A stretch of 64,000 nt of DNA from IMGVR_UViG_3300050122_000263:518008-582007; one strand, 5' to 3'; numbered from the stretch's first letter, positions 2,631 to 61,500 are shown. Translations and numbers: made by a program. Notes: generated by a model not told the origin, from the letters alone.

Positions 2631-2657
2631 AAAAATATCTCATCATGAGATATTTTT
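2631..2657. terminator. 3'-end hairpin
   Basis: aaaaatatctcat-c-atgagatattttt. Confidence 0.7.
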
Positions 2658-2696
2658 AATGTGTGCCCTTACTAAGACCAAGATCATTATGAATGG

Positions 2697-2846
2697 TTAA
2701 CCACCTCCTCCGTCCCATTTCGAGCCCATTTCGGGGAAAGTTGCATCTTTATTGCCACATACATAGCGGTCATAGAGATATATCGATGTGGGAAAGCTCA
2801 TAAAAAGCGCAAGAGAGATCACTGCGACAAGCAGCGGCGGGACCAT
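2697..2846 (-). CDS. Possible 49-aa single-pass membrane protein (not in ORF track)
   Basis: MVPPLLVAVISLALFMSFPTSIYLYDRYVCGNK...GGGG*; ends 40 nt before the 2631 hairpin. Confidence 0.35.
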   Translation of the reverse strand: MVPPLLVAVISLALFMSFPTSIYLYDRYVCGNKDATFPEMGSKWDGGGG

Positions 2847-2917
2847 GTTTTGCTTTGTCTTTCGCGTACGAGTAATATTTCTATATCACTTTTAATATCA
2901 TATTATTTCCCTAATTG

Positions 2918-4348
2918 TTATGGGGCTATATAGACCAAGCTGTCGAAGCTGGTAGTTCTATCTCTCACATCCACCAGCTCTGTGACTATTTGGTGGGAAC
3001 CTGGCATGTGAGTGAAAACAATAATGTCATATCCCAATTCTTTGCCTAACAGACATAGATCCCTGTCAAAACTATCTTCACTCGCGTAGAAACCCAATAA
3101 CTGCCCCATATAACGCTTGCGTTGTGGCAGACGAGCTATCTCCTCCTCTGTGAAAGATCTATTATAAAGCTGGAGTGGCCCACTGATCTTGTGTAACTTG
3201 TTATGACGATCCATCTCCTTAGTGTAAGCTGCCACTTCTAGAGGTGTCATCATCAGATCATCTGGCAGCCGTGGTAGCTGGCTCAGCTTCTTGCCGGCTG
3301 CGAAATCTCGGTAACCAAGACTGTAGGCTAGAAAGCTTTCATCAAATCCGTGAATAATGTGTTCCTCCTCGGATGGTGCTGTAACTCCTTCAATATAGGT
3401 TTTGTGACGCCCCAACATAGCTTCCATCTGCAACATAGCGACCAGTTTAGTGCGAGCAATTAGAGCGCGCCGGAAAGCTAGGTAGGTGCTAGACTCTGAC
3501 TCCAAGTTCCCGGTTAGGGAACTAGGGGCTTCCCCAGACATATACGTCGGGGGAAGCTCCACATAATAAAAGGTGCCACAGAAACTTCCGCCAGATTGAG
3601 ATGGACCATGATAGAGACCCCGACTCATACCTGCAGCATAACGGGTGACGGGAACCAGTTGCCATTCCATCCCATTCAACTCAGCCTTGAAATAAATGTC
3701 TGTGGGAATGATCTGTGTAGAATTAATAACCGAAGCCCCTGGAGTGCGGAAAATAGACATATCGGTGACAGGGCGCTTGCTCCGCTTATATACACGGTCT
3801 GGCGCAAATAATAGCAAAGGCAGTGAATTAGCTGTCTCGCCAGCTTCTCGGATAAGTTCGGCTACAGTACAATAGCGCCATCTGGGCCACTGTCGCAAAG
3901 TGAGGCTCTCATCGCTATCTGGGTCACTTAGGTCAGGTAATGTGGGAGCAAATGTGTACCAGAACTTTATCTCCTCTCTTGTCAATCCATTGAGGCGATC
4001 CTCTAGATAGAGCGTATTGAGTTCGGCTATAGTGGTTACGCCTTCTCCATAGCTCGGTAAGTAATCGTTACTCTCCTCCTCGGTGGGAAGTTCTGGTAAG
4101 AAACCGGCTCTCACAAAGGCCACAGCATCGGGAATTGAGCGCACGTTAAACAATAGGCATTGTTTAGCATCGCTAAGTTGTTGAGCTAGCAGAGCTCGGA
4201 TCTGCTCTGCAAAGGCTGGAATGTCTGTGATGTCTCCATAATAATGACGCCCCTCTGCATCAATGGTGCCGATGGGAATCAACGGTTTAGATGTCAGCTC
4301 CTCTTCTTCCTCCTCAAAAGAGACAGATTCATTGAAAGACTCTTGCAT
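2918..4348 (-). CDS. PVTRYA/GTFYY family protein, paralog 1 (possible ADP-ribosyltransferase-like fold)
   Basis: Shares AGFLP, PVTRYA.GMSRGL, GTFYY, DLMMTP, GYDI.IF...GSHQ.V.E..D.R with 14019 and 25864. Confidence 0.7.
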   Translation of the reverse strand: MQESFNESVSFEEEEEELTSKPLIPIGTIDAEGRHYYGDITDIPAFAEQIRALLAQQLSDAKQCLLFNVRSIPDAVAFVRAGFLPELPTEEESNDYLPSYGEGVTTIAELNTLYLEDRLNGLTREEIKFWYTFAPTLPDLSDPDSDESLTLRQWPRWRYCTVAELIREAGETANSLPLLLFAPDRVYKRSKRPVTDMSIFRTPGASVINSTQIIPTDIYFKAELNGMEWQLVPVTRYAAGMSRGLYHGPSQSGGSFCGTFYYVELPPTYMSGEAPSSLTGNLESESSTYLAFRRALIARTKLVAMLQMEAMLGRHKTYIEGVTAPSEEEHIIHGFDESFLAYSLGYRDFAAGKKLSQLPRLPDDLMMTPLEVAAYTKEMDRHNKLHKISGPLQLYNRSFTEEEIARLPQRKRYMGQLLGFYASEDSFDRDLCLLGKELGYDIIVFTHMPGSHQIVTELVDVRDRTTSFDSLVYIAP

Positions 4349-4415
4349 CTCGCTCCTTTCCTTGAGTTCGATAATAAATTGTCGCAGAGTTATAAATTGT
4401 TCTTTTCATATCTAA

Positions 4416-59126: not shown

Positions 59127-59189
59127 TATATCAGCTCTTATGCTCAAATTAAAGAGTAGCTCCAATTATAGGAGCAAACTAATAAATAC

Positions 59190-59211
59190 AAAACATCTTA
59201 TAAGATGTTTT
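59190..59211 (+). terminator. Perfect palindromic 3'-end hairpin
   Basis: aaaacatctta/taagatgtttt. Confidence 0.7.
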
Positions 59212-59321
59212 CATCCAACAGCCCCACTATAAGCTCTCTCCTGTCAATCAAGCTTAACAAGCGCTCAGTACCTTTAAGCAGCTCAGATGGGAACTTTTCG
59301 TTAATATATACACTGAGATAA

Positions 59322-61457
59322 ATGGAGCAGCACTCAAGTGAAAAGAATATCCTAGTGCCACAGAGCACTCTAGATGGGCCCCAGAGCACTAGAAGTATCC
59401 CAAGTCAAGGTCTTCTGTGCCAGACCATCGACTTTCAAGGAATTACCAGTTGCTGTGGTTTACCACCCATCGCTGGCATTGAGATAGGGACTCTCATCCT
59501 CATTAGAGGACCCAGCTGTTGTGCTCTCTTCCGTAGAGAAGGGGCCGGCTTTGTACCTGTCGACCCAGTCGAGCTAGGTCATTGTACGATAGGCCAGCCT
59601 TCAGGACCTTGTGCAGCGGGACCAAACGACAACCTAGGTGGAGCCTTCCTCTTCTTGGACACCACTACTTGCAATATCTATGTGATCGATCCCACTCACA
59701 CAGGGCCCTGTCTTAACATCTGTGCTGCTCTGGTAGCCATAGGAATTACTCTACAGACTGGTGACAAGCTCTTTGACTGTTGTTCTCAACAGATCTTTGA
59801 TCTTACTAAACAGGACACTGTGCCCGGTTGTGAGGGCGACATTGGCTGCGTCTGGCACGCGTGCTGTGCCATTGTTGGTGCCACTGGGCCCACTGGTCCA
59901 ACAGGCAGCACAGGGAGCACTGGTGCTACTGGACCTAGCGGGGATACCGGGCCAACTGGTTCAGGTGATACAGGACCTACTGGCCCCACTGGACCACCGG
60001 GCGGGCCTACAGGTCCCACGGGTCCAATTGGTCCTACCGGTCCATCAGAAGGACCCACTGGGCCCGCGGGACCGACGGGTAATACCGGATCAACTGGTGC
60101 CACAGGTGATCCGGGAGCCACAGGTTCAACAGGTGCAACCGGAACTGGTGATACTGGAGCCACTGGCACAACAGGTAGCACTGGAGATACGGGTCCTACC
60201 GGGCCAACCGGTGCTGGTGATACCGGAGCTACAGGTCCGACTGGCGAAACAGGCACAACTGGCGATACTGGAGACACCGGCTCTACCGGGGCTACAGGCA
60301 GCACTGGTGCAACAGGAGCTACAGGTCCCACTGGTGATACCGGAGCCACAGGCGCAACTGGAAATACTGGTCCAACCGGTGGTACAGGCGACACTGGCCC
60401 TACCGGCAACACTGGAGCTACAGGAGCAACTGGTCCCACTGGTGCAACAGGTAATACAGGCCCGACAGGAGGTACTGGAGCAACTGGTCCCACCGGTGCT
60501 GGAGTTACCGGCCCAACAGGAGCAACAGGAGTTACCGGCCCAACAGGAGCTGGATCAAGTCTCACTATGTTCGGAGATGGATCGGCCGGATCTCGTACTG
60601 TATCTGCCAACGAAGATTGGTCCACAACATCCCCGCCTTATCCCACCAACAATCAGTTCGTCGATTTCACCGTTAATGCTGGAATTACTCTGACTCTTCC
60701 TAGTGGCATGATTATCAAATGCACTGGTACCTTCACCAACAACGGCACCATCAATGTTCAACCGGGTGCTCTCGGTTATGATTCAGGGACGAATGCTCGC
60801 TTAGAACGGGGCTGTAGTCGAGCCCCTCCCGATCCTCAAAATAGCGGAACCTATGGCTCACCAGGAGGCTTGGCTTTCCCTGCCGTTTGGTTGGGTAAGA
60901 TCTTCACTGCCCCACTCCTGGCTGGTGGTAATGGAGCCAATGGAACAATTTTTCTAGATACATCGGTATCAGGTTCTGGTGGTGGTGGACTTAACGTCTA
61001 TGCTCGCATAGCTATCGTCAACAACGGCACAATCAATGCCAACGGAACCGCCGCTGTCTCTGGAGGGTTCCAGTCAGGTTCGGGTGGTGGAGGAGGTGGT
61101 TTCGCCATATTCATTTCTGAAGGATTGATCACAGGAGCTGGTATTATCAATGCCGTAGGAGGAGCTGGAACCGCTGGTGCTGCTGGTTCAAGCGGTGCTG
61201 GTGGTGGAGGTGGAGGTGGTGGATTTATCCATTTCGTCTCATCAGGTGCCCCAGCAGTTGCAACCAATGTATCCGGTGGTGCCGCAGGAGCACCCAATGG
61301 CACAACTCGAGATGGAGGAGGAGGTGGAGCGATGGGAGGTAATGGAGGACAAGGAAATCGACCGGCCGCTCTGGCCGGTTCCCCAGGTGTTGTTTTCACA
61401 ACTATCGTCACCAATCCCACCTCTTTGGCTCTCAATACTCTGACAGGAGTAGTGTAA
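59322..61457 (+). CDS. Collagen-like (Gly-X-Thr) protein 1: Cys-rich N-domain, Gly-rich C-domain
   Basis: About 225 aa of GPT/GAT/GDT triplets; C-terminal FGDGS.G and poly-G motifs. Confidence 0.9.
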
Positions 61458-61476
61458 AAGCTCCCAGAATTTTTTT

Positions 61477-61500
61477 AAAAACATCTCAGCAGATGTTTCG
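61477..61500 (+). terminator. 3'-end hairpin, identical to 56310..56333
   Basis: aaaaacatctcagcagatgtttcg. Confidence 0.7.

Follow-up and report, generated by a model that had tools for sequence, protein, structure and literature searches.

The window analysed here is a stretch of 64,000 nucleotides, bases 518008-582007 of IMGVR_UViG_3300050122_000263, which forms the final 64 kb of a 582,007-bp virus record of IMG/VR. Nearly all of its genes, encoded on both strands, are followed by short AT-rich hairpins and by A-tracts that lead into them (Table 1). An initial annotation made from the sequence alone had listed 24 of these sites. All 24 are palindromes with a leading A-tract; the stem is perfect in 22 of them (8-12 bp) and has one T.G pair in each of the elements at 19506 and 33395. 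Genes were called as greedy, non-overlapping open reading frames (ORFs) of at least 100 aa starting with ATG. They number 435 and cover 86.5% of the record, the percentages of genes given below being approximate. The window holds 46 of them, 37 with an A-run after the stop codon, 31 with a perfect hairpin and 41 with at least one of the two.

Table 1. Gene-end elements of the window, in window coordinates. A dot in the strand column marks an element common to two convergent genes.
Position	Strand	Element	Gene
741-760	+	9-bp hairpin; A5 at 702-706; weak, uncertain member	121 nt past 222-620
2227-2234	+	TTAAAAAC, without perfect hairpin	5 nt past stop of 876-2222
2631-2657	+	A5, 12-bp stem, loop 3	8 nt past 2264-2623
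5649-5672	+	A5, 10-bp stem	4416-5624
7241-7265	+	TTAAAAAC into 10-bp stem	6226-7212
7845-7851	-	A7 (sense = minus), then imperfect hairpin	88 nt past 7940-9337
10722-10726	-	TAAAAAC over stop codon, without hairpin	10725-11351
12327-12351	.	A6, 10-bp stem	11923-12297(+) / 12350-13858(-)
15140-15169	+	TAAAAAAC, 2-nt gap, 9-bp stem	14019-15125
17027-17049	+	TTAAAAAC into 9-bp stem	15594-17000
18213-18250	+	TTAAAAAG, 8-nt gap, 9-bp stem; absent from the initial annotation	17148-18206
18888-18903	+	two A5 runs within imperfect longer hairpin	18281-18883
19504-19529	+	TAAAAAC into 10-pair stem, one T.G pair	18950-19489
20580-20618	+	two A5 runs, the second into 9-bp stem	19751-20566
23437-23461	+	TAAAAAC into 9-bp stem, 3' side without T-tract	20714-23419
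24786-24812	.	symmetric TAAAAAC...GTTTTTA, 12-bp stem	23548-24747(+) / 24830-25774(-)
25834-25860	-	TTAAAAAC (sense = minus) abutting 9-bp stem on 5' side	25864-27051
27690-27724	+	TAAAAAAC over stop codon, then 11-bp stem	27203-27691
28566-28590	.	A6...T5, 10-bp stem	27923-28561(+) / 28641-28991(-)
29016-29020	-	TAAAAAC, without hairpin	41 nt past 29062-30039
30120-30155	-	TAAAAAC, then imperfect hairpin	30173-31216
32118-32137	+	GC-rich 9-bp hairpin without A-tract (atypical)	5 nt past 31192-32112
33395-33419	.	A5...T6 stem, one T.G pair	32269-33384(+) / 33456-34964(-)
35900-35924	-	TAAAAAAC into 11-bp stem	35949-37388
37545-37550	-	TAAAAAAT over stop codon, then imperfect hairpin	37549-38385
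38584-38609	-	TTAAAAAAC into 11-bp stem	38624-40855
41240-41266	-	TTA7T into 10-bp stem	41289-43817
43978-44006	-	A7C into 10-bp stem, loop 7	44039-45610
46605-46630	.	symmetric A6C...GT6, 12-bp stem	45761-46591(+) / 46704-47546(-)
49818-49859	+	TTAAAAAC, 13-nt gap, 11-bp stem; absent from the initial annotation	47836-49788 (poly(ADP-ribose) polymerase, PARP)
50607-50651	+	TAAAAAC, 17-nt gap, 9-bp stem opening with A4	49876-50598
53535-53557	+	TTAAAAAC into 10-bp stem	50847-53507 (paralog)
56310-56331	+	TTAAAAAC into 8-bp stem; 26-nt identity with the 61477 element	53622-56282 (paralog)
59190-59211	+	A4, 10-bp stem	64 nt past 56409-59126 (paralog)
61477-61498	+	TTAAAAAC into 8-bp stem	59322-61457 (unrelated to the paralogs)
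63368-63385	+	8-bp hairpin without A5 run	14 nt past 61507-63354

The two-part signal at gene ends

Hairpins were defined as perfect stems of at least 8 bp with loops of 2-8 nt, and dinucleotide-preserving shuffles of the intergenic segments (100 for the window) provided the chance control. The excess of hairpins over shuffled intergenic DNA, on which the proposal of the initial annotation depended, is clear both in the window (34 against 1.06 ± 1.05, with a maximum of 4 in any shuffle) and in the whole record (311 against 9.97 ± 3.2). The intergenic 13.5% of the record contains 324 of its 463 hairpins. About 318 of the 435 genes (73%) have a hairpin between -25 and 150 nt past the stop codon, mostly at 0-40 nt, and in the window the distance from stop to element ranges from -2 to 74 nt. 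A hairpin is found in 86% of convergent and 67% of tandem intergenic regions against 24% of divergent ones, in agreement with the assignment of the elements to gene 3' ends. Hairpins are not avoided inside genes, where 134 are present against 57 in shuffles. RNA folding of 14 window elements yields energies of -7.3 to -14.9 kcal/mol, with z values of -2.3 to -4.9 relative to shuffles. Since alignment of 21 window elements by MAFFT brought the A-runs in register and broke the stems, a covariance model was built from 10 in-register elements only. Run on the initial 200 kb of the record, it returned 25 sites at E<=1; all but one of them (24) are intergenic, and 23 have a stop codon no more than 170 nt away. 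The model is near-palindromic and discriminates strands poorly, 8 of 12 single-gene sites scoring best on the sense strand. None of the Rfam covariance models, including that of the histone 3' stem-loop, matched either strand of the whole window at E<=1.

Side-by-side reading of 141 tandem cases, in which a gene precedes another of the same strand, revealed a linear motif that lies upstream of the 5' arm of the hairpin or merges into it. Its sense-strand consensus is T(57%)-T(72%)-A5-7-C(54%)/T(33%). In the 83 nt past stops, stop codon included, TAAAAA occurs 230 times, where its coding-sequence frequency predicts 0.3, and TAAAAAC 108 times. The initial annotation had understated the A-tract, which is more than a bias of the stem, being a separate, strand-specific (T)T-A5-7-C motif. 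The polarity that had been proposed holds over the record. Between convergent genes the element is symmetric, with an A-run of at least five in 36% and a T-run of at least five in 28%, and after tandem genes the corresponding values are 40% and 10%, the three single-gene examples given at the outset (25834, 23440 and 56310) being typical. The preference for A over T in tandem regions persists for hairpins at least 15 nt away from the stop codon. In these regions the A-run continues past the stem by 1.26 nt on average at its sense 5' base, whereas T's extend past the 3' arm by a mean of 0.30 nt (p=6e-8). Among the 212 tandem genes, 148 are followed by a run of five or more A's (A5+) and 40 by a run of five or more T's (T5+). 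Homopolymer errors in sequencing or assembly were rejected as the source of the association between A-runs and stops: the runs are of A and not of T, hairpins follow them and independent assemblies agree.

Genome-wide, an A5+ run follows the stop codon of 281 genes (65%), a perfect hairpin is present in ~317, both in 202 and neither in 39. In 131 of the 202 two-part genes the A-run is physically in the stem, entering it by 1-8 nt, which argues for a single composite element over a pair of independent signals; most of the other runs end 0-20 nt upstream. The run overlaps the stop codon itself in 67 of the 281 genes. Several genes lacking a perfect hairpin carry TAAAAAC after their stop, often together with an imperfect hairpin, and gene ends with an A-run only are more structured than shuffles (mean z -1.5). 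The gene-end signal is two-part and strand-aware, combining a sense-strand A-tract and a hairpin.

The A-tract has a counterpart in its removal from genes. Observed counts in the 504 kb of coding sequence were compared with those expected when synonymous codons are permuted within each gene. The coding sense strands contain 73 A5 against 587 expected, 3 A6 against 165 (~55-fold depletion), 4 TAAAAA against 98.5 (~25-fold) and 19 AAAAAC against 113. Other homopolymers are depleted ~2-fold (T5 265 against 512, C5 184 against 426, G5 101 against 196); T6 is found 28 times against 123. Depletion of GAAAAA is 3.5-fold, to be compared with the 25-fold of TAAAAA. At the codon level, Lys-Lys is written AAA-AAA twice against 68 expected, and AAA-AAC occurs twice against 85 AAG-AAC. 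Selection is strong enough to have cleared half a megabase of coding sequence of nearly all its sense-strand TAAAAA. This loss does not come from sequencing error, since error would hit T-runs equally, and its direction is opposite to that for avoiding polymerase slippage. It indicates that the sense-strand A-run itself is harmful within genes.

A second A5 motif is found on the promoter side of genes, preceded by G in 40 of 75 cases and followed by T or G in 63 of 75. It reads for example GGAAAAAT or GAAAAAG, with cases in divergent regions such as the minus-strand context of window positions 24682-24686. This motif, which differs from the terminator-type TTAAAAAC, may be a promoter element.

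The stems at gene ends have 26% GC and a mean folding energy of -8.6 kcal/mol. Their 5' arm has A's at the base and C or T toward the loop, with T favoured at the closing pair. G is rare in this arm: C:G is about 3:1, with counts of 247:102 for tandem regions and 245:75 for convergent ones; hairpins within genes have a flat base composition. The initial annotation had also reported a preference for AAAAACATCT. This bias is real, ATCT being present in 61 of 266 5' arms and AGAT in 19, but it is soft and minor. Stem cores are otherwise mostly unique, hence the elements are not copies of a repeat. When IMG/VR was scanned for the preferred stem, only this virus had many copies of it; the single matches in other contigs are probably due to chance. 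Sequence is shared locally among the elements of four paralogs of ~890 aa without Pfam match (20714-23419, 50847-53507, 53622-56282 and 56409-59126; 33-55% identity, the last three in tandem), whose terminators have a common ACATCT core within unalignable flanks. The terminators of 53622-56282 and of the unrelated gene 59322-61457 share an identical stretch of 26 nt that takes in the loop (56308-56333 and 61475-61500). This identity without protein similarity could result either from convergence or from copying of a terminator between sites.

One segment of the window departs from the general pattern. The four minus-strand genes of 7940-11351 (7940-9337, 9508-10089, 10148-10693 and 10725-11351) have no perfect hairpin between them, and an A-run follows the stop codon of the first and the last only. 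These genes may be co-transcribed or may depend on weaker signals.

Source virus, relatives and known systems

The source is an uncultivated member of the Nucleocytoviricota, a giant virus recovered from peat metagenomes. IMG/VR labels the record 'provirus' and estimates its completeness at 61%; its GC content is ~46% throughout. The record codes for a major capsid protein of nucleocytoplasmic large DNA viruses, a family-B DNA polymerase, a fragment of the RNA polymerase subunit RPB1, TFIIS and an RNase III-like protein. The closest relatives of the capsid protein are metagenomic proteins only, with at most 43% identity, and those of the DNA polymerase share ~50%. A protein atlas placed the virus at the phylum level only. 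Among solved capsid structures, the closest come from Melbournevirus (7YJL, E=2e-14) and then from a grouper iridovirus (6OJN, E=8e-10), suggesting from these PDB matches a position near Marseilleviridae and Iridoviridae. A second IMG/VR record is 100% identical across 21.5 kb. Contigs from three other peat runs, compared with window positions 23300-29299, differ by a single G>A at 23983 in one contig, outside the elements.

The RNase III-like ORF (436 aa, record 312811-314121) matches Pfam Ribonuclease_3 with E=4.6e-13 and retains an intact catalytic signature ELEYLGD...DVFES. It is not part of a cluster of poly(A) polymerase and RNase III genes like that of mimivirus, and two unannotated ORFs near it have no PDB match; structures of the mimivirus and megavirus poly(A) polymerases are presumably present in the PDB. 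Within ~6 kb of this gene are two deoxynucleoside kinase genes (record 311837-312637 and 318177-318896), a patatin-like phospholipase gene and that of TFIIS. The open frame that matches RPB1 spans only 584 aa and is located in the 115915-119155 region of the record, outside the window. The ORFs beside it, 117455-119155(-), 116391-117407(-) and 115915-116334(+), belong to the 39 genes with neither signal, and the RNA polymerase gene may be split and contain an intron.

Thirteen related loci of IMG/VR, with capsid identities of 31-41%, have hairpins after genes with stems of AT/ACAT type, but their A-tract is weak or missing and most of them are without A5 depletion. A 240-kb relative (46% GC, 39% capsid identity), read almost in full, has hairpins in 35 of 52 convergent, 48 of 110 tandem and 9 of 52 divergent regions. 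An A-tract precedes a minority of these hairpins, the C/G ratio of the arm is 1.15, that is unbiased, and TTAAAAAC was not found on either strand. In this relative A5 is depleted 5-fold and T5 2.7-fold, and its genes contain 5 A6 against 63 expected and 7 T6 against 70, a homopolymer regime unlike that of the window virus. The hairpin is widely shared; what is specific to this virus, or much enhanced in it, is the strong A-tract together with the asymmetry of the arms, as anticipated by the initial proposal of a lineage-specific variant.

Hairpin 3' ends are known in Mimiviridae (PMC4402537), Pithovirus and Marseilleviridae (PMC5413956), and the elements, palindromes past stop codons in a virus with an RNase III-like gene, resemble this giant-virus rule as had been suggested. 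Like in Mimivirus and Megavirus (PMC4402537), the palindromes directly follow most stops whatever the orientation of the neighbouring gene, and the virus codes both for an RNA polymerase of its own and for an RNase III-like enzyme. The Mimivirus palindromes are however described as unrelated in sequence (PMC4402537) and are of at least 13 bp, whereas the stems described here have 8-13 bp, a strand-specific A5-7(C) at their base or 5' flank, arms that are asymmetric in pyrimidines and purines with C:G of ~3:1, and 26% GC. The 46% GC of the genome and the lack of a detected R341-type poly(A) polymerase in the record also differ from mimivirus and megavirus. The Marseilleviridae (Fabre 2017, PMC5413956) have a similar GC content, an RNase III, and about two thirds of their palindromes in the ~10% of the genome that is intergenic. 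They have no poly(A) polymerase (PMC5413956), and none was detected here in the ~61%-complete record. An A-tract or an arm asymmetry is not reported in the published description of their palindromes (PMC5413956); the present genome is larger (>580 kb) and histone genes were not detected in the record, unlike in Marseilleviridae.

Transcripts of invertebrate iridovirus 6, a member of a capsid-related group, are described as ending at hairpins with a conserved TAATG/CATTA and as lacking poly(A) (Ince 2017, in PMC5923455). A conserved complementary stem motif is common to both viruses, and the untailed iridovirus transcripts fit the lack of a detected poly(A) polymerase here. Either TAATG or CATTA is found in the 5' arm of only 5 of the 463 hairpins, the place of this pair being taken by AAAAC/GTTTT (A5-7C / GT4-5). 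Unlike the iridovirus motif as summarized there, the A-tract runs past the stem, on the sense side alone, and can be present where no hairpin is. The intergenic hairpin of the ambisense Tospovirus segments (PMC3283609) also pairs A-rich and U-rich tracts between convergent genes and is said to be a bidirectional terminator. Tospoviruses are nevertheless RNA viruses whose machinery is unrelated; each segment has a single long hairpin and, in that account, no short conserved A5-7C motif. The poxvirus TTTTTNT and the poly-T signal of African swine fever virus are also short homopolymers avoided in genes and read by a virus-encoded polymerase, but they are sense T-runs without a hairpin while the run is here of sense A. 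Terminators of this type were rejected: TTTTTNT follows 14 of the 212 tandem genes and T7+ a single one, and the purge of T5 is similar to those of C5 and G5.

Candidate mechanism of mRNA 3'-end formation

We favor the hypothesis that the elements are the virus's own signals for mRNA 3'-end formation, which we consider likely. They would represent a lineage-specific, two-part version of the giant-virus hairpin signal, an interpretation supported by the sequence statistics, and a role at the transcript level is suggested by their position past stops and by the agreement of their polarity with the gene strand. The first part is the sense-strand linear motif (U)U-A5-7-C. The second is a short, perfect and AT-rich hairpin, its stem of 8-13 bp and its loop of 2-7 nt, directly following the motif or overlapping it by 1-8 nt, whose 5' arm passes from A's to pyrimidines and whose 3' arm passes from purines to U's. 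Convergent genes share one symmetric element serving both strands, and a gene preceding another of the same strand keeps the sense-side A-tract alone. The viral RNA polymerase would read through the element, allowing the hairpin to fold in the nascent RNA, where the RNase III-like nuclease of the virus could recognise and cut it by analogy with mimivirus R343 and the RNase III of Marseilleviridae. As a symmetric hairpin alone cannot tell the strand, direction would be given by its asymmetric partner: the A-tract could orient the two-fold symmetric hairpin by positioning the cut or by binding a second factor. The cut RNA could then be polyadenylated, by a host enzyme or one that escaped detection, or could keep a hairpin or oligo-A end as described for invertebrate iridovirus 6.

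Transcript ending in giant viruses is known in outline, through the hairpin rule and an RNase III whose cleavage in vitro falls off the in vivo site. Mimivirus R343 alone fails to reproduce the in vivo cut, for which a missing factor was proposed (Priet 2015, PMC4402537). The A-tract is a candidate for this missing factor or ruler of hairpin processing. The contrast between sense-strand purges of A-runs and of T-runs provides a simple index that can be computed over giant-virus genomes to trace the origin of the variant, and the combination of A-tract and hairpin could assist gene and strand annotation of metagenomic giant-virus contigs.

Several observations weigh against this hypothesis. The seven runs that hold the sequence are all peat metagenomes, none of them on record as RNA, and their near-identical copies offer no sequence variation for an analysis of covariation. 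The stems of tandem regions are perfect Watson-Crick helices in 141 cases against 16 with one mismatch, and among these few imperfect stems G.T (6) is not favoured over A.C (7), so that nothing in the pairing points to selection on RNA rather than on DNA. Four Pfam families of poly(A) polymerases (PF19244, PF03296, PF04928 and PF01909) have no match in the ~61%-complete record, two of them having matched no control genome either. The gene calls are crude ORF calls, and part of the A5 purge may serve to avoid spurious promoters of the promoter-side G-A5-T/G type.

The strongest of the other explanations, though an unlikely one, is that the A-rich motif is a cleavage and polyadenylation signal of host type, addressed to the nuclear machinery of the host, with the hairpin as a separate virus element. 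The lack of a match to the four poly(A) polymerase families would then be expected, as in Marseilleviridae, which have no such enzyme and recruit nuclear proteins (PMC5413956), and the chlorella virus PBCV-1 does use the signal of its algal host (TGTAA in chloroviruses), with AAAAA enriched near its poly(A) sites. The frequent occurrence of the motif without a perfect hairpin, its stop-codon overlap in 67 of the 281 genes with a run and its strong avoidance within genes, as expected of a cryptic poly(A) signal, are in line with this view. It accounts poorly for the A-run lying within the stem in 131 of the 202 two-part genes and for the presence of viral genes for an RNA polymerase subunit and an RNase III. 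Quite unlikely, too, is that the 3' end is set primarily by the sense A5-7 tract and not by the hairpin, the tract being either an encoded oligo(A) end left by cleavage at the stem base or a template for stuttering. If true, such A-tract-led ends would be a mode of mRNA 3'-end formation undescribed for any DNA virus. The stuttering scheme on its own, in which the template T-run makes the viral polymerase write a poly(A) tail with the downstream palindrome acting as a block, appears improbable. Negative-strand RNA viruses make their tails in this manner at U-tracts, and the A-run has suitable features: it is strictly sense, located just upstream of a structure, 5-7 nt long, followed by a base other than A, usually C, and almost absent as A6 from genes (3 in 504 kb). 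The scheme would also dispense with a poly(A) polymerase. Multisubunit DNA-dependent RNA polymerases, however, usually slip in elongation on longer homopolymers (~9 or more), and an RNA hairpin cannot block copying of the A-tract because it forms after the polymerase has passed the tract, which leaves a block at the DNA level to be assumed.

We give very little credit to intrinsic terminators of bacterial style, where a hairpin and a U-tract would terminate transcription and the upstream A-tract would only render them bidirectional. Between convergent genes the elements do have the A-tract/stem/T-tract symmetry of bacterial bidirectional terminators, but after tandem genes the polarity is reversed (A5+ in 148 and T5+ in 40 of 212), the 3' flank is not T-rich and the stems, with 26% GC, are the opposite of GC-rich. 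A consensus scan of window positions 20-40 kb for such terminators found 21 sites against 15.9 ± 4.5 in shuffles and caught the true elements on the antisense strand. The sense T5 of genes is no more depleted than C5 or G5, and TTTTTNT (14 of 212) and T7+ (1 of 212) are rare after tandem genes. Palindromes acting at the DNA level, whether as cruciforms, as sites of recombination or replication or as small mobile inverted repeats, and merely tolerated between genes, would agree with stems that are perfect Watson-Crick on both strands and show no evident tolerance of G.U. Such palindromes would have no reason to lie past stops rather than in divergent promoter regions (86% of convergent against 24% of divergent regions), nor to follow the direction of the upstream gene; mobile copies would not have mostly unique stems, and within genes it is the sense A-tract that is avoided and not the hairpin (134 against 57). 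This explanation is barely credible.

Other genes and segments of the window

The GC content rises to 53% in the last 4 kb of the window (60001-64000), and extra hairpins cluster at 63368-63726, just short of the end of the record. The trimming of the 'provirus' in IMG/VR stops at the end of the window; the same capsid gene is also present on a contig of 620 kb. Several genes of the window are of cellular type. They code for an ERG4/ERG24 sterol reductase (33456-34964(-), E=2e-100), an F-box protein (35949-37388(-)), a class II aminoacyl-tRNA synthetase of Asp/Lys/Asn type (44039-45610(-)), a WGR-PARP poly(ADP-ribose) polymerase (47836-49788(+)), a collagen-repeat protein (61507-63354(+)) and a protein with a weak VWA match under the Pfam cut-off (876-2222(+)). 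Besides the ~890-aa paralogs, the neighbouring genes 38624-40855 and 41289-43817 form a second paralog pair with 29% identity.

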